A DNA stretch of 64,000 bases from Histomonas meleagridis 2922-C6/04-290x (taxonomy: Eukaryota; Protista; Parabasalia), in the NCBI GenBank assembly GCA_020184695.1, contig JAANOX010000080.1, positions 1 through 64,000 on the forward strand. Direction: 5' to 3'. Under the pieces are notes generated by a model that saw only the letters and a program-made list of their open reading frames with translations, ran no database searches and was not told where the DNA came from. Positions 863 to 44,331 of the stretch are shown here, in pieces; the first letter of the stretch is position 1, and every line of letters begins with the position of its first letter. Both the position numbers and the translations under genes were made by a program.

Positions 863-1816
863 ATGGGAGCAAAGAGATGTATTAAAAAGAATAATGTTAG
901 AATTAATGTCGATGGTGATAGGAGTATAAGTCAGATTAATCCGAGAGCTTGCAGATGGGTTGGAACCCTTAATAATCCTCCAGAAGATTGGCAAATCGTG
1001 TTGAAAAACGTATCAGAAGAACTCAATATCAAATACCTTATCGCAGAAAAGGAGTTTGCCCCTTCTACAGGCACTCCTCATATACAATTTTATTTTAGAT
1101 TATCTTCAAAACTTCATAAAAATACAATAACTAGTAAATTACATGGCTGTTTCATTGATATTGCTAGAGGATCTGAGGTTTCAAACTACAAATATTGTAC
1201 CAAAACTGGTGTCGAAATATTAGAAATAGGTAGTCCAATTGGAGCGATTGAGAATGAACGAAATAAGATTGAAAAAACAAGAGAGATGCTAAATGATGTT
1301 ATAACAATGCCTTGGATTGAGTTCGAAGCAAAATGGCCTTACCAGGCATTTCACCATTACAATAAGCTCAATGAGTACAAACTGAGACACGAGAAAACAG
1401 AAAACGTATGGAATGGAAATCTAAAGAGTAAAAATAAATGGATATATGGGCCGCCAGGAACAGGAAAGAGCCGGTGGGCGAGACAGCAAGCTACGAATTT
1501 AAATAAAGTGTACAAGAAAAATCTCAATAAGTGGTGGGATGGGTTCCACAATGATGAAGCAGAGGTTGTGGTCTTAGATGAAATGAACCCAAATAAAAGT
1601 GTCTTAGTCGATCAGTTGAAGGACTGGGGAGATCGTTACCCTTTCCAGGGGGAAGTAAAAGGATCAGCAATGACATTAGATCCTGGCCGTTGGTTTCTAA
1701 TAGTTACAAGTAATTTCTCTATTGAACAGTGTTTTCCGAACAGCGAGGATCAGGAGGCCATTAAACGCCGATTTGATGAAGTAGAGATAAAAAAAGTGCT
1801 GAGGACATACGTCTAA
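863..1816 (+). CDS. rep: CRESS-DNA-virus-type replication initiator (HUH endonuclease plus SF3 helicase), endogenous viral element
   Basis: Motif I WVGTLNN, motif II PHIQFY, motif III NYKYCTK, Walker A GPPGTGKS, WWDGF, Walker B VVVLDE, motif C IVTSN, Arg finger AIKRRF; 317 aa, no stops. Confidence 0.93.
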   Translation: MGAKRCIKKNNVRINVDGDRSISQINPRACRWVGTLNNPPEDWQIVLKNVSEELNIKYLIAEKEFAPSTGTPHIQFYFRLSSKLHKNTITSKLHGCFIDIARGSEVSNYKYCTKTGVEILEIGSPIGAIENERNKIEKTREMLNDVITMPWIEFEAKWPYQAFHHYNKLNEYKLRHEKTENVWNGNLKSKNKWIYGPPGTGKSRWARQQATNLNKVYKKNLNKWWDGFHNDEAEVVVLDEMNPNKSVLVDQLKDWGDRYPFQGEVKGSAMTLDPGRWFLIVTSNFSIEQCFPNSEDQEAIKRRFDEVEIKKVLRTYV

Positions 1817-5421: not shown

Positions 5422-6003
5422 ATGCAAGACGTAAAGCTCTTCGGAAAATGGTCTTATTCCGATATTGATTTTGAACAACTCGACAAAGCCCTTGTTGATT
5501 ACATCTCAGTCCACGAAAAGCAACAAGTTATCCTTCCACATACTGCAGGACGTTATCAACATCAACAATTTCACAAGGTAAATTGCCCACTTGTTGAGCG
5601 TTTCGTTTGCTATCTCATGTGTCACGGTCGTAATGCAGGTAAGAAACTTATGGCAATCCGCATCGTTCGCCAAGCATTTGATCTTATCAATTTAGTAACA
5701 GGTGAAAACCCACTTGTCGTCTTTGTTAAGGCTGTTCAATATTGTGGCGCTCGCGAAGATTCAACACGTATCGGTGTTGGAGGTACAGTTCGTCGTCAAG
5801 CATGCGATGTTTCTCCACTTCGTCGTATCAATCAATCACTTGCTCTCATAACAGAGGGTGCTCGTAAGTCAGCTTTCCGCTCATCTAAAACAATCGCTGA
5901 GTGCCTTGCTGATGAACTCATTGCAGCTTCAGGAAACACAAACGATAGCTATGCTGTCCGTAAGAAGGATGAACTTGAGCGCATTGCCAAGTCTAATCGT
6001 TAA
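5422..6003 (+). CDS. RPS5: 40S ribosomal protein S5 (uS7)
   Basis: [45 protein letters not shown]; first ATG at 5422. Confidence 0.97.
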
Positions 6004-6158
6004 AAAATTCATCTAATTAATATTAACATTTTTCTTCTTTTTAATCACTTTTTAAATGATTTATAAACCTTCCAATTTTTGGGAGTGTGTTTCTGTTAAA
6101 TGTGATCGTTTAAAATTAGGGGGACTTGAAATATCGGTATCACTTCAAGACATCTATA

Positions 6159-9100
6159 ATGAATTCTACGATAAACTTTATAGAAGGTGAAAAGAGGGAT
6201 AACAATGAATCTATCGCATATGTTAATTTACTTGTTTCTCTTGAACGAATTATATTTAATTTAACAGAAAGAAATCTTGATTCATCAATCGATAAAATAA
6301 TGAAATTATTCGATATAAATCATCCCTATTCATATAATTTTATAATAGGAAGTTTGGTTTACTTTGCATATTTTTCAACACCAAATAAATCATATGATTT
6401 ATACCTCAAATTTTTGGAATCTATACAATTAAGAGAAGAAGAAATGAACAAAAATATTTTCAAAATATTAAAGATTTTTATTAATTATATATCAGATATT
6501 GAATCACAAGAAGCATATTTTCTAATTGAACAAATGAAAGTAAGAAATTTAATTGATAACGATAATATTCATGATAATATGATTAAAAAACTTTTCATAT
6601 GTCCAAATAAACAATCAATACATAACATTTCTTTATGTTTTGCCCATTACATGTCAAATAAAGAGATTAGTGAATCAATAAAAGCCAATCAATTTTCCAA
6701 ATTCTTTTCAAACAACGAAGATATGCTCAAAAAGAATGATTGGGAACTTCATAAGAAATTAATTGAAGAAGGAATCAATCCAAATAAAATGACAAAAATA
6801 ATTCGAAATGATGAATTAGAAAAGCTTCAAGAAATATCATCACAAGATGATTTTGATTTTAATCAGAAAATTGAACCATCACTTTATGAAAGATGTTCAT
6901 TTATTAATGTAAAAAATGTTTCATTAATTGATTATGCAGCATTCTTTGGATCTATTAAATGTTTTAAATATTTACTTATGAATGGAGCAAAAATAGAAAA
7001 CACAGGTAAATATGCAGTTGCTGGTGGAAACTTAGAAATAATTCATTTATGTGAACAGAATCATTCAACATTTGAAGAAGCATGTAAAATTGCAATTGAA
7101 TTTCATCGAAATGATATCTTTAAATATATATATGAAAATAAAACAGAAAAAACTGAAGAAAAAATTGATGTTTTAGAATATTTATGTATTACCTATGGAA
7201 ATTATGAAATTCTTTTCTTTTTGGAAGAACAAATGAGGATCAGTGAATCTATTATTACTGAAACAGCAAAATTAGGAAATTTATATCTTATTAAATATTT
7301 CTTTCATAAATATCAAATCCCAAATAATATTTTAGTTTTTGCTGTAGAATCAGGAAATATAGAACTTGTTAAATATATTCTTGAACAAAAAGGAATTGAT
7401 GTTAATGCTATGGGAAATCATTTTTTATATTTAATATTTATATTAATAATTTTGGGTTTTAAAATTTTATTTGGTATTTATTCTTACTTATTAGAATAGC
7501 ACTTATTCTTGCATCTGAAAAAGGTAATATGGAACTTGTGAAGTTACTTCTTGAACAAAAAGGCATTGATATTAATAAAAGAGGAATTTTTTTGTTTCAT
7601 ATCATATTTGCTTCAATTATTTTTTAATATTTCTTTATATTATTTGGAAATTATTTAATTTAATTAACTCAGCACTTATTTGTTCAACTTTAAATAATGA
7701 TATAGAAATAGTTAAATTACTTCTTGAACAAAAGGATATTGATGTTAATGTTAAAAATGTTTGTATATTTCGTTTAATGTTTGTTTAAATCATTTTATAT
7801 ATTAAAATAATATTTGGAAATATTTTCAAATATTTGAAACAGCACTTATGATTGCGTCATCAAATGGATTTATAAATATAGTTAAATTACTTATTGAACA
7901 AAAAGGAATTGATATAAATGCTAAAAATGTTGAATTTTTTTGTTTATTATTTATTTTAATAATTTTATATTTTAAAATAAATTTTGAAATTTATTCCATA
8001 TGTTGAGATCAGCACTTACAAAGGCATTCCAATATTCACATTTAAATATTATTAAATTACTTCTTGAACAAAAAGGAATTGATGTTAATGCTAAAGATAT
8101 TTATTTGTTTTACTTGAAGTTCATTTGAATAATTTAAAATTACAAAATAATATTTGGAAATTACTTAAATTACTTTTGACAATGTTTATATGGGCATCTT
8201 CAAAAGGATTTATAGATATAGTTAAATTACTACTTGAACAAAAAGAAATAGATATTAATGATAAAACTATTTATGTGTTTTATTTAATATTTATTTTAAC
8301 AGTTTTTTATTTCAAAATAATATTTGGAAATTATTTTATTTATTTGTAACTGCACTTCATATAGCAATTAGAAATAATAATACAGAAATAGTTAAATTAC
8401 TTCTTGAACAAAAAGGAATTGATATCAATGCTAAAAACATATATTTTTTTCATTTTATGTTGACTTTCATAATTTCATATTTCAATATAATGTTTGGAAA
8501 TTATTTAAATTATTTGATACAGCACTTATTTTAGCATCTTATGAAGGTCATACAGAAATAGTTAAATTACTTCTTGAACAAGAAGGAATTGATATTAATG
8601 TTAAAGGAAATATTTATTTATAAAATTTTATATTTCACAATAATATTTGGAAATTATGTAAATTATTTAATACAGCACTTATGTTTGCATCTGAAAATGG
8701 TCATATAGAAATAGTTCAATTACTTCTTGAACAAGAAGGAATTGATATTAATGCTAAATATATTTATTTGTTTTATTTATAATTTATTTTAATAATTTTA
8801 TATTTCAAAATAATATTTAAAAATTATTTAAATTATTTAATACAGCACTTATTTTAGCATCTGAAAAAGGTCATACAGAAATAGTTAAATTACTTCTTGA
8901 ACAAGAAGGAATTGATATTAATGCTAAAGATAATTATTTGTTTTATTTAAAATTTATTTTAATAATTTTATATTTCAAGATAATATTTGGAAATTATTTT
9001 AAATGTTTTATACAGCACTTATGATTGCATCTAGAAATGGTCATATAGAAATTGTTAAATTACTTCTTAAACAAAAAGGAATTGATATTAGTTCTAAAGA

Positions 9101-9271
9101 TATTTGTTTATTATAACTAAAATTTATTTGAATAACTTCATATTTTTTCATTGTATCTGGTAATTATTTAAATTATTTAGTACAGCCCTTATGAATGCAC
9201 TTAATTATAGTCATCCTGAAATTGTTGAAATATTACGCCAATATGAAAATTCTAATAACATATGTAAATAA
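6159..9271 (+). CDS. DUF3447-type ankyrin repeat protein; C-terminal repeat loops punctuated by 43 spacers of 17 nt (predicted 793 aa after removal)
   Basis: IDYAAFFGSIKCFKYLL and GGNLEIIHLCEQ region, then stop-free ankyrin cores (TALILASEKGHTEIVKLLLEQEGIDINAK type) joined by 11 linkers; 3113 - 43x17 = 2382 nt = 794 codons. Confidence 0.8.
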
Positions 9272-9947
9272 TATAAGTTAAACTATTAAATCCAAGAATT
9301 ATCGAGAAACAACGGATTTCATAAAAAGATGATTTTTATTATTTTTTTTCTTTGGCTCCTATACAAAATTTTTATCCAAACAATAAACACATTACAAGAA
9401 AAGTAAATGACAAATTATATCAAAGAAAAAAATGGAAATTTAGAGATATTATGGTAAAAATGCATTTTTTTACAGAAAGCAAAAGAAAGATATTTCATAT
9501 TTTAAACAAGCACAATATGTTTATCTTGAGTAGTACATTGAATTTTTGAATTATTTATAATGTTTCATATATATTTAAACCGCTGGCAAATGAATAGAAT
9601 TAGACAAAATTAGATTAAGATATAATGATTTTTTAAAATTTTCTTTTCCTTTTGAATTTTGTCACTTTCCATTTAATTGTGCGCGATGTAATACTTTTTC
9701 AAAGCAAAACGATCATTTGTAAATGATCCCCTTGATAACCACATGCAAAGGAAATGTTATCATCATTTACATTCATGTAGTTGCTATATATATATTGGGA
9801 TTTCTTATTGGGAATATTGATCACCCGCTTCCGAATCTACCAATTTTCGCTTGTACAATATGCTATCGAATTTTTTTTAAAAAGTATTGTGTCTGAACGA
9901 CCGTTTAATCTTGTGGATTTTAACGTTTTCTTTAGGATAATTTCGAG

Positions 9948-12900
9948 ATGCAACCTTCCACACTTCATTCTCAGCTTGAATCTTGGGCACATTCAAACAA
10001 CGATTTGTTTGCTCGCCATGGTCTTACTGAGTCCAAAATCTCTGTTTCTAAAGGGCCAGCTCTTTGGAAATCATCTGGAATTAATTATCCAAGTAATTTT
10101 GATCATCCCGGGATTACCTTTTTTGAAGCACCATCTGTTGTCGTGAACAGAAATTATTCATATCCAAATCCATCAAATTTATCAGATTGTTCACCTCAAT
10201 ATAATTTATTCACATATGATTCTAGTAAACTACCTGAAGATGCTCCAGAAGATTTAGATGAAATTGTTAAAAGGTCACCTCCTTTAGTTTCAGTTTTTAC
10301 AAAAAATCAATTTCCTCCACCACTTCAAGATCAAAGAACAGATGTAGGAATTTTAAAACCAGGACAAATTCTATATTATACTCTTACCTTTGACACACTT
10401 TCTTCAACATCACCAATTATTGAACCCATTGTTATTAATGTTTTTTTATGGGATCTTGACAAGCATAAAAAACTTTCGGCTATTTGGCGTTTTCTTCCTA
10501 GCGCTGATAATTGTGAAAAAAGCTTAATGGAATTAATTCAACCGACAATTATTAATGGCCCTACATCTATGTCAATACCACATACACAATCGCACAAACG
10601 CATTGCTATAATTGTATCTCTTGATAGGCTTTTATTAAAATCAGCCGGTTCATCACTTACTAAATATTATGAGAAAAGTGGGAGCTCAGCAAGAAACGCT
10701 GCGTTAAATGATCTTCATCAATGTAATCAAAAATGGACATTAATCACATTTGCATGGGCATGGAGACCATATACTGTTTTGCCAACTTGTGATTCAACTC
10801 CATTCAAATTCACCAACTTTTTCAGCACACAAACGGTCTCCGACTTTTTCTTAACAACCGCCCTTTCAAATTCAGTTCATTCAAAAGATAAACCGATACC
10901 GTTTGAAGTTCAGTTTAAAATCAGCAAAGAGAATCCACAAATCCCTAAACTTCAACATCGATTTAGCTTTCCAGTATCTCCATTATTAACTTTTGTAAAT
11001 GAATTAGTTATCCAACCAATTCAAGCAAGATTCAAATTTCCACGACATATTCATGGGCGAAATATTGTAGCAGAAATTCAAATTGTTAGTGATGGGAAAC
11101 CTATAAAATGCTTTGAAGGAAGTGACATATTTATTACTCATTGTCAATATCATGAAGAAACGCCATATTTTAGTGAGGACATTATTGCACAATTACCATT
11201 AACTTTAACGACAAACACAAAATTATTCATAAAGTTTTATCATGCGTCAGTTAAACCTAAAGCCAAAACTAACAAAATTTCGTGTGGCACATCGATATAT
11301 AATTTATTTAAAGAAGATGGCTCATTTATTAATAATGGAATTCATAATTCAGGAATTTCATATTTAAATGATAATGAAATTGTTACTGCGTTAGAGAACA
11401 ATTTTTTCTCATTTAATATTATCTTAAATAGTAATATTTATTCAAGTGATTTACAAATCACGAACATATTTAAGAACAAATTAACGCAATTAAAGCCAAC
11501 GGAATATAATTTGTTAATACCACATTTATATTCAGTACTTGATAAAATGATCACTAATATTAACAATAATGATAATAATGGATTTAATGGATTAATCCAA
11601 ATATTATCAGTGTTTCAACGTGATCGAAATCATCAAGAATCACAATACTTAATATTTTATTTAAAGTTTTGCGCATTACGACATGAAGAAGAGAAAACTT
11701 TTCATCAACGATTTATACCAATGTGGAAAAACTATTTAAAGAATAATGAATTCTCACAGAAACGTCCCGACTTTATTAATTGTTGGTTTCTATTAGAGTT
11801 AATCACGAAATCGATATTAATCTCAAAAGAAAGTGTTGACTCGAAAACATTATTATCTATTTCATCACAATTATCAAGTTATTTACCATTATTTAGAGAT
11901 AGTCGACAAACTATTGGGACCACATTAAACAAATATTTGTTCTATTTTTATAAGGACTTATTTGATGTTTTAGATCATGAATTAATATGTAAAATGATAC
12001 AAAATCATTTAGCGAATTTAAACCTAAAAAATAATTCGAATTTGTTCGATCGAGAATGTTTTCGAGATATATTTCAAACATTTATTTCTCCAAAAATATT
12101 TTTATATTTAATAGCACCAATTAATTATATAAAGAATTCATCATTATTTATAAACATATTTTTACCACATATCGAATCAGCTATGAATATATATGAACAT
12201 ACAAATGAATTATTTCGAAATATATTTAATTTATTATTACAATTTAATTATAATGAACATGTAATTATTGCTCCTTTATTAATACCATTATTAGAATTAA
12301 TTGGAAAAAATGAAATAATTTTTAGAAAATGTCCTTCGAAATCTTATTTAATATATATATTTGTAGTAGCACATTATATATTTTATTATTCGAAAAGTAA
12401 ACTTAAAAAGAAAAAATTAATAAAATCTGCATTAATATTATTAAAATATTCTACAAAATTAACTCAAAAAGAATTAAAAGAAATACAATTAACAACAAAT
12501 AAAATGTCATCAACAGAAAATATAACAAAAGCAATGTTAAATAATTTAAATGGTGATCAAACATTTGTTTTACATGCAGAACATCAAACTCGAACAAGAA
12601 GATTCGCTTCATTAAAAATGGCAAATCGGAATAATTTATTTAGTACTAATAATTTAATCGAAGAGAATAAAACAGATTATATAAAAATATTCGATTCATT
12701 ATCATTTATTATTCAAGCATTAATATTAAAGTTATCAAATGTTTCATTAAACTCAAAAACTTTTAACAAAATATTAATAGTTTTCTCAGATATTAATATT
12801 CCTCCATTACTAATAAAACAATTCCAAAAAACTTTAGTAAATTTTGCCGAAAATTTAACGCAAATTGTATTTAATGATGAAAACTCGAATTTAAAACATA

Positions 12901-17044: not shown

Positions 17045-17076
17045 GTAAACCACTTAAATAGCATTACTTTACATAT

Positions 17077-17847
17077 TTTGACTTAAGCAGAGAATGTTCA
17101 AACTGTTGAACTATTTGACTTAAGCAGAGAATGTTCAAACTGTTGAACTATTTGACTTAAGCAGAGAATGTTCGAACTGTTGAACTATTTGACTTAAGCA
17201 GAGAATGTTCAAACTGTTGAACTATTTTGACTTAAGCAGAGAATGTTCGAACTGTTGAACTATTTGACTTAAGCAGAGAATGTTCAAACTGTTGAACTAT
17301 TTGACTTAAGCAGAGAATGTTCAAACTGTTGAACTATTTGACTTAAGCAGAGAATGTTCAAACTGTTGAATTATTTGACTTAAGCAGAGAATGTTCGAAC
17401 TGTTGAACTATTTGACTTAAGCAGAGAATGTTCAAACTGTTGAACTATTTGACTTAAGCAGAGAATGTTCGAACTGTTGAACTATTTGACTTAAGCAGAG
17501 AATGTTCAAACTGTTGAACTATTTGACTTAAGCAGAGAATGTTCAAACTGTTGAACTATTTGACTTAAGCAGAGAATGTTCAAACTGTTGAACTATTTGA
17601 CTTAAGCAGAGAATGTTCAAACTGTTGAACTATTTGACTTAAGCAGAGAATGTTCAAACTGTTGAATTATTTGACTTAAGCAGAGAATGTTCGAACTGTT
17701 GAACTATTTGACTTAAGCAGAGAATGTTCAAACTGTTGAACTATTTGACTTAAGCAGAGAATGTTCAAACTGTTGAACTATTTGACTTAAGCAGAGAATG
17801 TTCGAACTGTTGAACTATTTGACTTAAGCAGAGAATGTTCGAACTGT
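17077..17847. repeat. Tandem array of a 37-bp unit (20 full copies plus one 30-bp partial)
   Basis: tttgacttaagcagagaatgttc(a/g)aactgttgaa(c/t)ta head-to-tail, no unique spacers. Confidence 0.97.
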
Positions 17848-18091
17848 AAATCTTTTGCTGAATATTTCACAATTTGATCATTTTGTGATAAGTCATTTAT
17901 ATAAAAAATACGCAAATATATTGTGCAAAAAAGTTTATTGATGTTATTGATGTGTGCTTTACCTTATAGTTGCGGAATGAGAGTTCCATCACTATTTGGT
18001 TGGATGAAGGTGATGTGTGTTATGTGAGTAAAGTAATCAAAAATGTGCAATTTGTGAAGTGACAATAAAGAAATTCAATTGACGTCTGCCA

Positions 18092-23791: not shown

Positions 23792-25153
23792 ATCGTGACC
23801 AAGTAATTTGATGGTTTTTTCATGATAGTTACTTTTTGCTCGTGAAAGTGCTGTTTCAAATATTTTTAATAATTTCCAAATGTTATTTTGAAATTCTAAA
23901 TTAATAAAATAAATAAATATCTTTAGCATTAAAATCAATTCCTTCTTGCTCAAGAAGTAATTTAACTATTTCTGTATGACCATTTAAAGATGCATACATT
24001 AGTGCTGTCCAAAATAATTTAAATAATTTCCAAATATTATTTTGAAATATGAAATTATTAAAATAAATATTAAATAAAACAAATAAATATCTTTAGCATT
24101 AATATTAATTCCTTCTTGTTCAAGAAGTAATTTAACTATTTCTGTACGACCATTTGAAGATGCTAATATAAGTGCTGTATCAAATATTTATAAAATATTT
24201 TAAATAAGTGAAATAAATTGTAAATTATTTAATTAAATATAAATCATAAATTATTGAAATAAAATTCAAAATATTAAAATAATCATCAAATATAAAAAAT
24301 AAATTGTAAAATACATAAATAAATACCTAATAACTAAAACAAATATTAAATTTTTAATATTGATCCAAAATTATTAAAGTAAATATCAAATTATTAAAGC
24401 TAATATAAAACTTTTATAACAAATATAAAGCTATTAAAATAAATATTAAATTATTAAAACAAATCTGAAATTATTAAAACAATTCTCAATATATTAAAAT
24501 AAACATGGATTGCATTCACGTCAACCCCATTTTCTAATAGTAATTTCACTATTTCTACAGAATTATTCTGAATAGCCATATGAAGTGCTGTTCCAAAATG
24601 ATAAAAAATATTTCAGATATATAAAATAAATATCATATCAATAAAATAAATATCAGGTTATTAAAATAAATACCAAATGATTAAAATAAATGCAAAATTA
24701 TTAAAATAAACATAAAATTATTAAAATGAACATCAAATTATTAAAATAAACGTAAAATTTTTAAAATGAACATAAAATTATTAAAATAAATTTTTTTATT
24801 AAAGTCAATTCCTTTTTCTAAAAGGAATTTTACGATTTCTGTATTGTTGCTTTTAGCAGCCAAAAAAATAGTTTTGCCAAATAGTTAAAAGGTATGTGAA
24901 ATTAAAATAAATATTAAATTATTATATTAAATATATTTTGTATCAAACTTAAATTCTTTTCGATTTAATAAAAATTTCATAAGATATAAATTTTCAAATT
25001 TTATTGTATCATTAAAAATATTAACATCAATTTTCATTCCTTCTTTTAGTAAATAAGAAAAAATTTCATAATTACTGTATTCAATACATTCCTTACCAAG
25101 TTTATCCATATTTTCTACTTTAAAGATTTTGTTTTCATAAAGATATTTAAATA

Positions 25154-39455: not shown

Positions 39456-40325
39456 TCATTTTATATTAGCAACAAAAACAGAAAGTGAAATCCCAAATAG
39501 TGCAATCTGAGTAACGCTCGAGAAATTATCAACTTCTAATACATTTTTGGATATCTTTCGAATGGAAATCGTTTCGGATGCATCTTCACTTACAAAAATC
39601 ATGTTTTTCTGACTAGGAATTGTAAATTTATGTTTGAAATCAAGCTCCCAGCGTTCGAGTTTATCTTGTTGAGGTCTTTTTGATTCAAGTTTAAGTAATG
39701 TTGTGCCATCTTCATTAAGGATATTAACATTACATTTTGGTGGTAAACCTAGAATTGATGAATCACTTACAAATCTGATGGATAAAATGGTACGGTCATT
39801 TGTATTTGGCTCCGTAAGAGTGAAATAAGAAGATTTTGGAACAAGATAGAAATCAAAATCTTTACTAAGGTGAGGATTTGAGCCTTTTTTAATTGGAATA
39901 GGATTACTAGGATGCCTTGATTTGGTTTTCGCACTGAATATAATGTCATCTTTATAGTAAAAATAGAAGAAATATGATTTACCACGTATTGAATTTTTGA
40001 TTTTGCGATGAATTGAAAATAATTGAGGTGAATAGGAAACATCCTTTGTTGGCAGAATGATGATAGCGTCCTTTTCTTCGTTTTCGTGATAATCATTTGA
40101 TTCAACAAAACTATCTGATGAGCTTTCAATGCTTCGCGGTTTTGAATTTGTTTTTTCTTTTTTAGTTGGTAAGATAGGAATCTTATTTTTAATTTCTGAA
40201 GAATCTGAATAATCATGAGATTTTTCTGAGACTGTTTGAAGTAGCTTTGGAATAGCGCTGATTGGAGAAGAACTAATGTCAGAGGTATAACTGGAATACG
40301 ATGAGAAAGAAATTCGTTTTTTCAT
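39456..40325 (-). CDS. Tubby-like C-terminal domain protein
   Basis: LESKRP...WELDFKHKFTIPSQKNMIF resembles the tubby C-terminal motif. Confidence 0.55.
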   Translation of the reverse strand: MKKRISFSSYSSYTSDISSSPISAIPKLLQTVSEKSHDYSDSSEIKNKIPILPTKKEKTNSKPRSIESSSDSFVESNDYHENEEKDAIIILPTKDVSYSPQLFSIHRKIKNSIRGKSYFFYFYYKDDIIFSAKTKSRHPSNPIPIKKGSNPHLSKDFDFYLVPKSSYFTLTEPNTNDRTILSIRFVSDSSILGLPPKCNVNILNEDGTTLLKLESKRPQQDKLERWELDFKHKFTIPSQKNMIFVSEDASETISIRKISKNVLEVDNFSSVTQIALFGISLSVFVANIK

Positions 40326-40479
40326 TGCTTAATACCTCTATTCCAAGAAAAAAAATGTTTTTGTGTTTTCATTCAGTAATTGAGATATAAATCATTTAGA
40401 AAACAAATACCAAAATAATCTAAAGAAAGAAAATTGGGATATTCTGTGAGTTTAGTTTATTAATTGTATGACTTCTTCT

Positions 40480-41829
40480 TTATATTTCTTCTTCTTTAGT
40501 TTCTTCCTTTTCTTTTTCCTCTTCTTTTATTTCTTCTTCTTTCATTTCTTCTTTTAATTCTTCTTCTTTAGTTTCCTCTTTTTCCTCTTCTTTAGTTTCA
40601 TCTTTATTTTCTTCTTTCACTTCTTCTTTCATTTCTTCTTTTATTTCTTCTTCTTTCACTTCTTCTTTTAATTCTTCTTCTTTAATTTCCTCTTTTTCTT
40701 CTTCTTTAGTTTCTTCTTTTTCCTCTTCTTTAATTTCTTCTTCTTTAGTTTCTTCTTCTTTCGTTTCTTCTTTAATTTCTTCTTCTTTGGTTTCTTCTTT
40801 TTCCTCTTCTTTTAATTCTTCTTTTTCCTCTTCTTTAGTTTCTTCTTTCATTTCTTCTTCTTTAGTTTCCTCTTTTTCTTCTTCTTTTTCAGTTTCTTCT
40901 TTAGTTTCTTCATTTTCTTCTTTCACTTCTTCTTTTTCAGTTTCTTCTTTATTTTCTTCCTTTTCTTTTTCCTCTTCTTTTATTTCTTCTTTCATTTCTT
41001 CTTTTAATTCTTCTTCTTTAGTTTCCTCTTTTTCTTCTTTCATTTCTTCTTCTTTAGTTTCCTCTTTTTCTTCTTCTTTTTCAGTTTCTTCTTTATTTTC
41101 TTCCTTTTCTTTTTCTTCTTCTTTATTTTCTTCTTTCATTTCTTCTTTTTCCTCTTCTTTCATTTCTTTTTTAATTTCTTCTTTCACTTCTTCTTTTTCA
41201 GTTTCTTCTTTATTTTCTTCCTTTTCTTTTTCCTCTTCTTTTATTTCTTCTTTCATTTCTTCTTTTAATTCTTCTTCTTTAGTTTCCTCTTTTTCTTCTT
41301 TCATTTCTTCTTTTATTTCTTCTTTTATTTCTTCTTTTATTTCTTCTTTAACTTCTTCTTTAGTTTCTTCCTTTTCTTTTTCCTCTTCTTTTATTTTTTC
41401 TTCTTTAACTTCTTCAACTTTTTCTTCTTTATTTTGTTCTTTCACTTCTTCTTTTATTATCTCATTTTCCTTTTCGCTGATTTTTTGATCTTCAAATTGA
41501 TAGAGTCCAAAATTCACAGCAAAAACTGAACTACATGTTTGTAATTTTTCGATTAGTCTTGAAAATGTTTGGTTTGTGTTAGGTTTTTTGGATCTATTTA
41601 ATTCATTTTTCGCTATCATAAACCCAAACTTTTTTGAAAATTTTGATTGTACACTTTTTGCTTTAACAAGGGTGCATGAAATAACTTTCTTCAAATTGTT
41701 GGAAATTGATTTTAAGATTTTTTGCATTTGTTGGATAAATTTTTTATAAAAAGTTTCATCGCTAGGTGAAGCTTGGCCATTATTTGATTCAAGATTTCCA
41801 AATACACAAGTTAGATAAAGAATCAGCAT
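40480..41829 (-). CDS. Signal-peptide protein with a long Glu/Lys-rich low-complexity tail
   Basis: MLILYLTCVFG start; KEE(E/T/I/M) repeats over about 330 codons; the last codons may be frameshifted (alternative end KEEVIQLIN*). Confidence 0.7.
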   Translation of the reverse strand: MLILYLTCVFGNLESNNGQASPSDETFYKKFIQQMQKILKSISNNLKKVISCTLVKAKSVQSKFSKKFGFMIAKNELNRSKKPNTNQTFSRLIEKLQTCSSVFAVNFGLYQFEDQKISEKENEIIKEEVKEQNKEEKVEEVKEEKIKEEEKEKEETKEEVKEEIKEEIKEEIKEEMKEEKEETKEEELKEEMKEEIKEEEKEKEENKEETEKEEVKEEIKKEMKEEEKEEMKEENKEEEKEKEENKEETEKEEEKEETKEEEMKEEKEETKEEELKEEMKEEIKEEEKEKEENKEETEKEEVKEENEETKEETEKEEEKEETKEEEMKEETKEEEKEELKEEEKEETKEEEIKEETKEEETKEEEIKEEEKEETKEEEKEEIKEEELKEEVKEEEIKEEMKEEVKEENKDETKEEEKEETKEEELKEEMKEEEIKEEEKEKEETKEEEI

Positions 41830-42172
41830 ACCTGTATTATTTATTATTTAGCCAGAATTCGAATTTGAAATATTTACAAAAAGTGTTATGTTTCATGAAT
41901 TTGGCAAAAATTCTGAAAGCAAATTTACCTAGAATTGTTGAATAATTTACCCCCATTTAAATTATTATTTAAAATTTCCTAAGTGCTTCTTTAAATATGT
42001 TATTTTTATCTCTTTGTAATGGGGTGAATAATATTTTTGTTTTCACTTATAAAATTTAATAGAAGTTCTTTTTTCTCAAATTTCATGCTAAGCACGTTTG
42101 CAGTTAAAAAAAGTGGAAATATGAATTGTTTACTGAATATTTTCCTGATAAATCAATGACTATATTAAATTT

Positions 42173-44331
42173 TTAATGTTTTTTCAGTAATTTGAATATT
42201 TCTTTGTGCCCATAAATATATGCGATATCAAGAGCTGTTTCAAATATTTTGAATAATTTCCAAATATTATTTTGAAATATCATGTCAACAAAACAAATAC
42301 TAAAGAAAATAAGCAAATATCTACAACATCAATCTTTATATCTTTTCGTTTAAGAAGTAATTTAGCAACATCTAAATGACCTTTTTCAATTGCAATCATC
42401 AGAGCAGTTTTAAATCATTGTAAAAAATTCGAAATAATCTTTAGATAAATAAAATTTTTAAAACATATATAAAGTAAACTAAATAAATAGTTTTGGTATT
42501 AACATTAATATTTTTTTGCTCAAGAAGTAATTTAACGACATCCAAATCTCCAATCATAGAAGCCAAAATAAGGAATGTGTAAAATATTTTAAATAATTTC
42601 CAAATATTATTTTGAAATATCAAAATAACCATAAAAATATTTAATAAGATAAACAAATATCTTTCATATTAATATCAATTTCTTCTCGTTCAAGAAGTAA
42701 TTGAACAATATCAATATGGTTACAAGCAAGCATAAGCGCTGTAGAAAATAATTTTAATAAAATCCAAATAGTAATTTTAAATATCAAATATTACTAATAA
42801 ATATAAAATATAACGAATTGATATCTCTTGCATTGATATTAATTTCTTTTTGTTTAAGAAGTGATTTAACTATTTCTGTATAACCAAAAATTGAAGCTAA
42901 CATAAGTGGCGTAGCAAATTATTTAAAAAAATTCCTAATACTATTTTAAAATATCGAAATATCAAAATAAATTTCATATAATTAAAAGAAACAACAAAAT
43001 AAATAAACAAAATGTTCTATCATTGATGTTAATACCTTTATGTTTAATTAGTAATTTAGCTATTTCGATAGAACCTATTTCAGATGAAAGTGCAAGTGCA
43101 GAATAAAATATATTAAACAATTTCCAAATATTATTTTGAAATCCATAATTATTAAAATAAATATTAAATATAAAAAATAAATATTTTTAGCATTTACATC
43201 GATTCCTTTTTGGTCTAAAATATATTTAACAAGTTCAATATTTTTTGATTCTGCTGCATAAGGCAATATATTTTTAGGAATTTTTTCGGTTTTAAGAAAA
43301 TATTTTGTAAGGAAAATATTACCAACTCTTGGTGCTTCATTCACAATTTCTTGATTAAGTTTCATTCCTTTTTCTTTTAGAAATGTAAAAATTTCATAAT
43401 TATGATACACAATACATAATTGAGTTAAGAATACTATCTTTGGATTCGATTCGAGTTGATTTTCATATATATATTTAAAGACATCATTTCGATGATATAT
43501 AATTGCATTACTATATGATCTTTGAAATACTGAATGATTTTGTTCACATAAATGAATAATTTCTTCATTTCCGCCTGCTACAGCATATTTCCCAGTATCA
43601 GATACTTTAGCACCATTTAATAACAAATATTTAAAACATTTAATTGCTCCAAAAAATGCTGCATAATCTATTAGTGATGCATTTGTTTCATTAATAAATG
43701 AACATCTTTCATATGGTGATGGCTGAATTTTTTGTTTAAAATTAAATTTTGACTGTGATGATATTTCTTGAAGTTTTTCTAGATTATCATCTCGAATTAT
43801 TTTTGCAATTTCATTTGGATTTACTCCTTCTTTTATTAATTTCTTATGAATTTCCCATAAATTATCAGCATTTGACTCTCCAATATCATTTAGAAAAAAC
43901 CTACAATATGGATCATCAAATCCATGAATATTATTTTTTTCTAAGAATGGATTTTTTATATTTTCAATTTTTGCATCAATTAAGTTGTTTTCAATCATTT
44001 GAATAAGAAGATAATATGATTCTTGTGTGTTTTTCTTTTGAAGAAAATCTTGGAATTCATTAAGTATGTTTGCTTGAATTTGTTTATTTTCTTCAAATGC
44101 TTTTACTTTTTGAAGAAAATTCAAATACATATCAGAGTCTTTTGGATTTGCCATAAATAATGAATATACAATTTGATAAATAAGCATGTTAAAAGATAAA
44201 GGATAATCCCCATCAAAGTTGCTAAAAATCGATTTTATTGATTGATCAATGTTTTCTTTATTCAACCCAAAAATTGTATTTTTAATTGATAAGAGGAATT
44301 CCCATTCATCCTGTAAGTTTTGCTTTGCCAT
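42173..44331 (-). CDS. DUF3447-type ankyrin protein; loops punctuated by 25 spacers of 17 nt (predicted 577 aa)
   Basis: Paralogue of 6159-9271; six linkers (83, 103, 83, 83, 83, 83 nt); 2159 - 25x17 = 1734 nt = 578 codons. Confidence 0.8.

Follow-up and report, generated by a model that had tools for sequence, protein, structure and literature searches.

Parabasalids have T-rich introns of 23–25 nt in which the branch site is fused to the 3' site, and the type B introns of Trichomonas vaginalis and T. stableri are 23–28 nt long, with GT-AG ends and a (T/A)CTAA branch site (PMC12316389). Among recorded parabasalid introns the shortest, a GT-AG one, measures 23 nt. Still shorter introns are listed in PMC12316389 for Stentor coeruleus (15–16 nt) and the Bigelowiella natans nucleomorph (18–21 nt). 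The Histomonas meleagridis genome paper describes introns as scarce and makes no mention of 17-nt inserts (PMC8529796). We analyzed a 64,000-nt stretch of the genome of H. meleagridis 2922-C6/04-290x (assembly GCA_020184695.1, contig JAANOX010000080.1, positions 1–64,000, forward strand), referred to here as the window. A gene at 6159–9271 encodes a DUF3447/ankyrin protein and is interrupted by 43 inserts of 17 nt (spacers), which fall between single codons of the loops that connect its ankyrin cores. We consider it likely that each insert is excised from the RNA individually and that the flanking codons are joined. The excising machine is probably a divergent spliceosome. We found no described intron type that matches the inserts, and full-text literature searches gave no description of them.

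The spacers resemble Trichomonas type B introns in being parabasalid, ultra-short, T-rich and nearly free of motifs beyond their ends. Type B introns have a branch-site A at a fixed short distance from the 3' end, and so would the spacers, whose branch A is putative. Type B introns occur once, rarely twice, per gene and in any phase, whereas the spacers are 17 nt long, start with RT, end with T, lack AG and CTAAC, form tandem arrays of up to 16 separated by 3-nt exons and are always in phase 0. The introns of Stentor and Bigelowiella demonstrate that excision from RNA is physically possible at such a size, and they too have very narrow length distributions. They keep GT-AG and lie dispersed through the genome between normal exons, with no tandem arrangement and no single-codon spacing.

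Less similar systems share single traits with the spacers. U12-type minor introns (AT-AC or GT-AG) also have a first base A or G followed by T, but they are long and rare and carry the 5' site RTATCCTT and the branch site TCCTTAAC, both of which are missing from the spacer profile. The 3-nt microexons and recursive splicing of animals and plants indicate that single-codon exons can be spliced and that adjacent intronic segments can be removed sequentially. Unlike the codons here, known 3-nt microexons are isolated between long canonical introns, depend on exon-definition factors and form no 20-nt periodic array. Euglenids and the tunicate Fritillaria borealis have non-canonical introns that lack GT-AG, are cut out of nuclear pre-mRNA and are numerous within one lineage. 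Those of Fritillaria have ordinary lengths and AG-AC or AG-AT ends; euglenid non-conventional introns use base-pairing of their ends, whereas the linkers described below have no end-pairing fold.

Spacer and codon structure of the gene

The gene begins with an uninterrupted exon that belongs to open reading frame (ORF) 6126–7499 and encodes a DUF3447/ankyrin N-terminal domain. Pfam matches on this exon are to DUF3447 (E 1.6e-11) and Ank families, and its nearest named homologues are H. meleagridis DUF3447 proteins, followed by Tritrichomonas. The Pfam domains, together with the D-x-x-G-x-T loops of the decoded protein, place the product among the ankyrin-repeat proteins, in the DUF3447 subfamily of parabasalids.

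The repeat part that follows has a tandem period of 170 nt and consists of 11 ankyrin cores, free of stops and indels, and 11 linkers (Table 1). Nine linkers are 83 nt long and split as 3+17+3+17+3+17+3+17+3. The other two measure 86 nt (7583–7668), with one codon more, and 66 nt (8606–8671), with one spacer fewer. In the 66-nt linker the codons GGA and AAT abut, and the frame is kept because exactly one 17-nt unit, not a 20-nt module, has been lost. With 43 × 17 nt deleted in silico, a single ORF of 793 aa remains, which opens with the ATG at 6159 and closes with the stop codon at 9269–9271. The decoded repeats are 34 aa long, and NNYGETALMIASSNGFINIVK is an example of a predicted loop-spanning peptide. 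This arrangement of 17-nt spacers between single codons had been proposed in a first-pass annotation made from the sequence alone, and it was reproduced here. Re-parsing the linkers gave the same eleven loop readings and the same 56 retained triplets, with no stops and with Gly at loop position 4, the penultimate one, in 9 of the 11 loops.

The spacer consensus is RTTTATTTWAATWATTT, with the profile R-T-T-T-A-T-T-T-W-A-A-T-W-A-T-T-T. Both ends are conserved (RTTTAT...ATTT). Position 1 is A or G in 96% of spacers (A 56–70%, G 26–40%), and T occupies position 2 in ~90% and position 17 in 90–93%. Further inside, A is conserved at positions 5, 10–11 and 14, and C makes up at most 7% at positions 5–8 of most spacers. 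Some spacers open with GTATGT, GTATAT or GTTTAT. The profile is near-identical between H. meleagridis and its metagenomic relatives.

Chance was assessed on 36 clean linkers, which come from five genes of H. meleagridis and from several metagenomic relatives. In the predicted register, the 205 retained triplets contain no stop and have 31.5% GC. Stops average ~8% in the remaining 19 registers, and registers wholly within spacers have 4–14% GC. The retained triplets code chiefly for D, G, N, Y, E and K. Of the 30 linkers of 83 nt, 24 have D or N at loop position 1 and 23 have G at position 4, a composition that fits the ankyrin D-x-x-G-x-T consensus. The linker pattern exceeds chance. The ORF stays open when the register is shifted by up to ~3 nt, and blastp of alternative splicing models against uninterrupted relatives does not separate registers within ±1. 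The register is fixed by base composition, the ankyrin consensus and two RNA contig boundaries (see below) together, not by ORF continuity.

Within the gene, nucleotide diversity (pi) of the spacers is 0.25, equal to that of the cores, and the retained triplets are twice as variable (0.49). A dN/dS comparison, which the first-pass annotation had suggested as a check, proved uninformative within this array: diversity at codon positions 1, 2 and 3 of the cores is 0.25, 0.18 and 0.23, with no clear signal of purifying selection.

Linkers in DNA and RNA data

One DNA run (X1) and three public RNA runs (X4, X5 and X6) were compared over 5900–9500 as contigs with depth. Sampled words of 6100–9300 were present at fractions of 0.87 and 0.74 in DNA runs and 0.33–0.45 in RNA runs. 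For the repeat part, the k-mer share in four RNA runs was 0.26–0.29; 0.34 is expected if the cores alone are present. DNA contigs cross linkers 0–2 unbroken (7382–7573, 7548–7721 and 7706–7905; X1 records 4–6) at a depth of ~530, and contig depth through the linkers (~520–540) is single-copy. RNA contigs lie on 6147–6758 and 7114–7377. RNA depth in the N-terminal exon is 16–36, and it is zero in the intergenic bin 6021–6141.

Depth over the repeat part is family-wide. The ratio of RNA to DNA depth (X4/X1) in cores is 0.85 at 8868 (core 9) and 0.60 at 9053, compared to 0.002 at 8780, 0.015 at 8819 and 0–0.003 at 8119–8122 in linkers. At 8119–8127 in linker 4, RNA depth is 0–105 against a DNA depth of 4,907–26,979. 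Linker interiors are ~50–1000-fold depleted in RNA relative to cores. At position 8933, 98% of DNA depth reads T and runs on into the spacer, and 90% of RNA depth reads A and runs on as loop codons. The 15 best-supported core–core joints all occur in RNA only, with 0 contigs in DNA run X1. They hold 6–20 letters between cores, which form ordinary loops such as GAG AAT GAT GGA AAT.

The first-pass annotation had listed four candidate mechanisms: non-canonical micro-intron splicing, deletion editing, ribosomal bypassing and DNA elimination. The data support splicing or deletion at the RNA level and disfavor the other two. Under bypassing, the spacers would stay in the mRNA and ribosomes would hop over 17 nt after each loop codon. 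Inserts of fixed length that separate intact codons suit such a take-off and landing scheme, and one spacer (7476–7492) is present in an RNA contig. Magnusiomyces mitochondrial byps and T4 gene 60 are similar in that short inserts split an ORF between codons without intron signals, but byps persist in the mRNA, where the ribosome skips them. Here, with the exception of spacer 7476–7492, linkers have RNA/DNA ratios of 0–0.015 against 0.6–0.85 in cores; RNA contigs connect cores through 15–18-nt loops; and the RNA k-mer share of the repeat region agrees with the presence of cores alone. Bypassing is unnecessary since the spacers are missing from the RNA, and we consider it very improbable.

DNA elimination would remove the spacers from a transcribed genome copy, like the internal eliminated sequences (IESs) of ciliates. 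The spacers and Paramecium IESs are alike as short, AT-rich inserts with precise boundaries in coding sequence, and IES excision is precise. IESs are, however, removed from DNA, bounded by TA and at least 26 bp long, whereas here the DNA keeps the inserts and the RNA loses them. Nuclear dimorphism is not known from parabasalids. Because the DNA contigs carry the linkers at single-copy depth and the 15 best-supported joined forms are absent from the DNA run, we rate elimination as extremely unlikely.

Evidence specific to this gene comes from an RNA contig of 181 nt found in two runs (X5 record 22 and X6 record 30) at a depth of 28–33, like the N-terminal contigs. It matches 7473–7585 exactly and continues with 68 letters unlike the adjoining DNA. 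Its start (7472/7473) lies directly after spacer 3 of linker 0, at GGT; DNA unitig 7382–7573 passes 7473 without a branch. Its match ends at 7585/7586, between GGA, the first loop codon of linker 1, and spacer 1. The length can be written as 181 = 113 + 15 + 53 if linker 1 contributes only its five remaining codons, the 53 letters being core 2. The contig then ends at 7721, the same end as DNA unitig 7548–7721. The boundaries and the length arithmetic are evidence that 68 nt (4 × 17) of linker 1 are missing from the RNA. With the depletion of linkers in RNA, the boundaries at 7472/7473 and 7585/7586 support the earlier claim of a real, expressed gene decoded by an unrecognized removal of 17-nt units.

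Several points weigh against this reading. The same contig keeps spacer 4 of linker 0 (7476–7492, atttattcttacttatt) at full gene depth, and the kept spacer would give a stop at 7497–7499. Since the kept spacer would break the frame, a functional, full-length product of this copy is putative. Support at the locus consists of contig boundaries, length arithmetic and depth ratios rather than of mature junction letters. A very large paralogous family underlies the depth ratios, and the RNA runs are labelled 'RNA?', their library type being guessed. Protein-database searches for spliced cDNA with 7463–7585 and with the N-terminus of gene 3 gave no matches, and the initial search gave only DNA-derived ORFs ending in the first linker. 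Spacer 7476–7492 scores low against the profile and is the gene's sole spacer to end with TATT instead of ATTT. Across the family, the last spacer is kept ~10 times more often than interior positions (0.015 versus 0.002). These two observations on retention suggest that inserts are removed independently and with unequal efficiency.

The interrupted arrays might instead be dead or silent, with the linker-free RNA coming from a minority of uninterrupted paralogues and nothing being excised. At 8933, about 2% of DNA depth reads A, as most RNA depth does; contigs from paralogues of this huge family dominate the matched data; and one loop in a relative (L009) is uninterrupted. Against this, the unique N-terminal part is transcribed at the depth given above while the flanking intergenic bin has none, and the boundaries at 7473 and 7585 of a contig with the same depth are seen in RNA only, the first at a point where the DNA unitig is unbranched. 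Among ~45 loops of five H. meleagridis genes, 0 are uninterrupted. A lack of stops in 205 triplets and ankyrin-consensus loops are not expected to persist in dead DNA, and spacer motif and length are conserved between divergent lineages. We find this origin of the linker-free RNA improbable.

Each linker could also be one unconventional intron with a 20-nt minisatellite interior, the 'codons' being an artefact of register. Minisatellite expansion would yield linker lengths of 20n+3, and the shifts of up to 3 nt that ORF continuity allows agree with this account. Such an intron would leave no loop or the wrong loop, the Gly codon being 60 nt into the linker. Variation sits in the triplets, which are G/A-rich, are never stops and fit D-x-x-G-x. 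The length exceptions are −17 and +3, not ±20, and RNA boundaries fall at an internal spacer edge (7473) and right after the first loop codon (7585). One intron per linker is highly unlikely.

Three other parses were tried and rejected. A model with a 51-nt and a 17-nt intron, which keeps the first 9 linker bases and GGANNN, conflicts with the end of the RNA contig match at 7585, after the first loop codon, and with loose RNA ends that depart from the DNA after GAT(A), not after 9 nt. One canonical GT-AG or AT-AC intron per linker fails for lack of a conserved GT or AG, and a usable GT is missing altogether from linker 7. If the last 23 bases of each linker are read in the core frame (WKLFKLFN), TAA occurs in 2 of 11 linkers, and family RNA depth over these bases is only 1.5% of that in the core.

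Candidate mechanisms of the proposed excision

Each linker would be a string of separate 17-nt T-rich intervening sequences, not one spacer, with one insert wherever two codons meet inside the five-codon ankyrin beta-hairpin loop (D/x/x/G/x). The gene would be transcribed with the inserts, and each would then be cut from the RNA and the neighboring codons joined, giving the 793-aa DUF3447/ankyrin protein with canonical loops. The cuts may be set by short signals at both insert ends together with a nearly fixed length. A divergent spliceosome might pick the 3' cut by its distance from a branch A (the conserved A at 10–11 and 14), a geometry that would extend the fused branch site and 3' site of the 23–25-nt Trichomonas type B introns. 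Excision would have to be sequential since the exons are only 3 nt.

A divergent spliceosome is favored by the RT or GTATGT-like 5' ends, the T-richness, the uniform phase 0 and the precedent of 23–25-nt introns in parabasalids. Counted from the 3' end, the conserved A's of the spacers lie at −8/−7 and −4, positions that we compared with the fused branch site of parabasalids. Other properties argue against a spliceosome. Of the spacers, 56–70% start with A and 90–93% end with T; AG is required in none of them, a CTAAC-type branch motif is absent, and tandem 3-nt exons are unprecedented. The ends thus differ from the GT/GC...AG of U2-type introns, and the U2-type branch site fused to the 3' site in parabasalids (ACTAAC) is not found in the spacers. 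The first-pass annotation had already remarked on the lack of a terminal AG and of this branch motif. Both statements hold: 0 of the 43 spacers end in AG, and the Trichomonas-type motif ACTAACACACAG, with up to 2 mismatches, matches the window 3 times, a number at chance level, and the gene not once.

A further point against the preferred reading is spacer length. A linker of 84 nt in the relative L005 (L005:3313–3396) satisfies the codon rule only with one 18-nt spacer (gttgatttttaaaggcat), and a 67-nt linker in another gene of the window (23857–23923, minus strand) fits only with a 21-nt first spacer, which makes the latter a probable exception. Spacer length is therefore not absolutely fixed. 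The 'length-measuring' mechanism proposed earlier stands insofar as length is nearly constant; these two spacers, and the conservation of both spacer ends, do not fit measurement of length by itself.

The inserts could also be excised one by one without a spliceosome, by an endonuclease and a ligase or by guide-RNA-directed deletion that measures ~17 nt from a short 5' signal. The absence of GT-AG or AT-AC termini and of a CTAAC-like branch motif speaks for this route, as does a length that is almost invariant across lineages. The first spacer base shows no covariation with the last spacer base, which also counts for such a cutter, nor with flanking codon bases. The 3-nt exons are hard to square with spliceosome footprints. 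On the other side, four linkers folded with their flanks gave z-scores of +0.84, −0.72, +0.18 and −2.06 and no common RNA fold. The same four lack the bulge-helix-bulge (BHB) or twin stem-loop that marks tRNA/archaeal BHB and IRE1-type introns, or any other stable fold. Many spacers start with GTATGT, GTATAT or GTTTAT, like the parabasalid 5' splice site, all are T-rich and in phase 0, like Trichomonas type B introns, and no candidate enzyme or guide was found. We regard removal by such a non-spliceosomal system, cutter-ligase or guided deletion, as unlikely.

If individual excision is confirmed, the spacers would be the first tandem intervening sequences separated by single-codon exons and the shortest non-GT-AG inserts removed from nuclear transcripts. 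They would test the limits of recognition by the spliceosome or reveal another excision machine.

Related genes and other features of the window

Cores were anchored with a profile hidden Markov model (HMM) in three genes of the window, two genes of H. meleagridis L008, and the metagenome contigs L005, L009, L010, L012 and L013. They delimit 41 linkers, with lengths of 83 nt (30 linkers), 103 nt (two), 66 nt (two) and 143, 183, 283, 200, 86, 84 and 329 nt. The lengths of 103, 143, 183, 283 and 200 nt obey 20n+3 or 20n. Those off the pattern are 66 (83−17), 86 (83+3) and 84, with its 18-nt spacer.

Table 1. Coordinates of the interrupted ankyrin gene, its parts and related genes (window positions unless a contig is named)
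Feature	Position	Strand	Description
Whole gene	6159–9271	+	DUF3447/ankyrin protein, 793 aa after in-silico loss of 43 spacers
Uninterrupted first exon	6159–7415	+	N-terminal domain, first ankyrin repeat and first loop codon GGA
11 ankyrin cores	7496–9268	+	87 nt (29 codons) each, from HMM anchoring and translations; starts at 7496, 7669, 7839, 8009, 8179, 8349, 8519, 8672, 8842, 9012, 9182
Linker 0	7413–7495	+	83 nt, loop GNWGR; spacers 7416–7432, 7436–7452, 7456–7472, 7476–7492
Linker 1	7583–7668	+	86 nt, loop GHFNGN; spacers 7586–7602, 7606–7622, 7629–7645, 7649–7665
Linker 2	7756–7838	+	83 nt, loop NNYGE; spacers 7759–7775, 7779–7795, 7799–7815, 7819–7835
Linker 3	7926–8008	+	83 nt, loop NIYER; spacers 7929–7945, 7949–7965, 7969–7985, 7989–8005
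Linker 4	8096–8178	+	83 nt, loop DEKGL; spacers 8099–8115, 8119–8135, 8139–8155, 8159–8175
Linker 5	8266–8348	+	83 nt, loop TNFGV; spacers 8269–8285, 8289–8305, 8309–8325, 8329–8345
Linker 6	8436–8518	+	83 nt, loop NYHGD; spacers 8439–8455, 8459–8475, 8479–8495, 8499–8515
Linker 7	8606–8671	+	66 nt (83−17), loop GNYGN; three spacers 8612–8628, 8632–8648, 8652–8668
Linker 8	8759–8841	+	83 nt, loop YIYKN; spacers 8762–8778, 8782–8798, 8802–8818, 8822–8838
Linker 9	8929–9011	+	83 nt, loop DKYGY; spacers 8932–8948, 8952–8968, 8972–8988, 8992–9008
Linker 10	9099–9181	+	83 nt, loop DKHGS; spacers 9102–9118, 9122–9138, 9142–9158, 9162–9178
Second family member	42170–44331	−	N-terminal ORF 43075–44331, then six ankyrin cores
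Third family member	23854–24872	−	Expanded loops (24179–24791)
Two further H. meleagridis genes	L008:1493–2618 and 7513–8105		GCA_020186115.1; linkers of 283, 183, 143, 103, 66 and 83 nt, all rule-conforming

In the second family member, loss of 21 spacers leaves the ORF open across five linkers. Its sixth linker (~42232–42314), parsed by eye, reads GAT/AGT/GAT/GGA/GAA and leads to a stop after ...KLLKKH. The third has a 200-nt linker made of ten 17+3 modules, with the codons TAT TAC GAT TAT TGC GGT GAT GAT GAA GGA, and another of ~326–329 nt that holds ~16 modules. The most divergent relative, L005, has 39% identity in the N-terminal domain and distinct spacer sequences, and its loops decode as NNDGD, NEDGE, NKDGN and SNDGT. 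On L009, a spacer-free loop of 15 nt (AAT GTC ATG TTT GAG; 1851–1865) lies between two cores, and the next linker is a normal 83 nt. This loop looks like a precise loss of all four inserts and a natural example of the excised state. More distant relatives (P0026, P0029 and P0052) have uninterrupted arrays in multi-gene DNA contigs, and the inserts are therefore lineage-restricted.

The expanded linkers consist chiefly of copies of the second-spacer type, each with one variable codon. The 20-nt module of insert plus codon might grow or shrink by slippage, each change adding or removing one loop residue in frame, and the linkers of 103, 143, 183, 200 and 283 nt would result from such slippage. 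A broader reading is that the inserts are a new class of intervening sequence, removed by a ruler-like machine other than a conventional spliceosome, with the 20-nt module serving to diversify, in frame, both the length and the sequence of target-binding loops in a very large ankyrin family; we put it forward tentatively, as possible though on the unlikely side. Slippage between near-identical inserts would then add, delete or shuffle single codons with the frame intact. Designed ankyrin binders are randomized at surface positions that match the retained loop positions 2, 3 and 5. A role of the modules in loop diversification is conceivable by this analogy, and expandable 20-nt modules suggest a new route for repeat proteins to vary their binding loops.

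The inserts also affect annotation. Annotated H. meleagridis proteins and many metagenome ORFs stop within a few residues of entering the first linker. In the published H. meleagridis annotation, genes of this family are cut short at that point; P0009, for example, breaks off in its first linker, ending '...GIDINAQNI'. Because of this truncation, the annotation is wrong for a large ankyrin family in an important pathogen of poultry. Such genes will escape RNA-seq aligners and gene finders here and in related gut parabasalids.

The window is gene-dense and AT-rich, with long uninterrupted genes for a DOCK protein, a cullin, CNOT1, a kinase and an adaptin. No convincing lone 17-nt insert came out of a profile scan of the window's non-ankyrin genes. 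The best candidate, 10003–10019 (plus strand; atttgtttgctcgccat), has a low score and may be due to chance; deleting it would join a 74-codon upstream frame to a 1510-aa DOCK-like ORF.

Three further features of the window were noted. A tandem satellite with a unit of ~43 nt (gacttaagcagagaatgttcaaactgttgaactattt...) occupies 17076–17850, between the cullin gene and the next ORF, and is unrelated to the ankyrin spacers. An ORF of 317 aa at 863–1816 (plus strand) matches Pfam Viral_Rep (E 8.7e-9) and RNA_helicase (E 5.4e-8), which identifies it as a predicted CRESS-DNA-virus-type Rep embedded in the protist chromosome. The minus-strand ORF at 40480–41829 (449 aa) has no Pfam match and contains repeated TCTTTAGTTTCCTCTTTTTCTTC-like units. 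It probably encodes a low-complexity charged repeat protein, and the region around it (40001–42000) has extreme strand skew, with a GC skew of −0.32 and an AT skew of −0.46.

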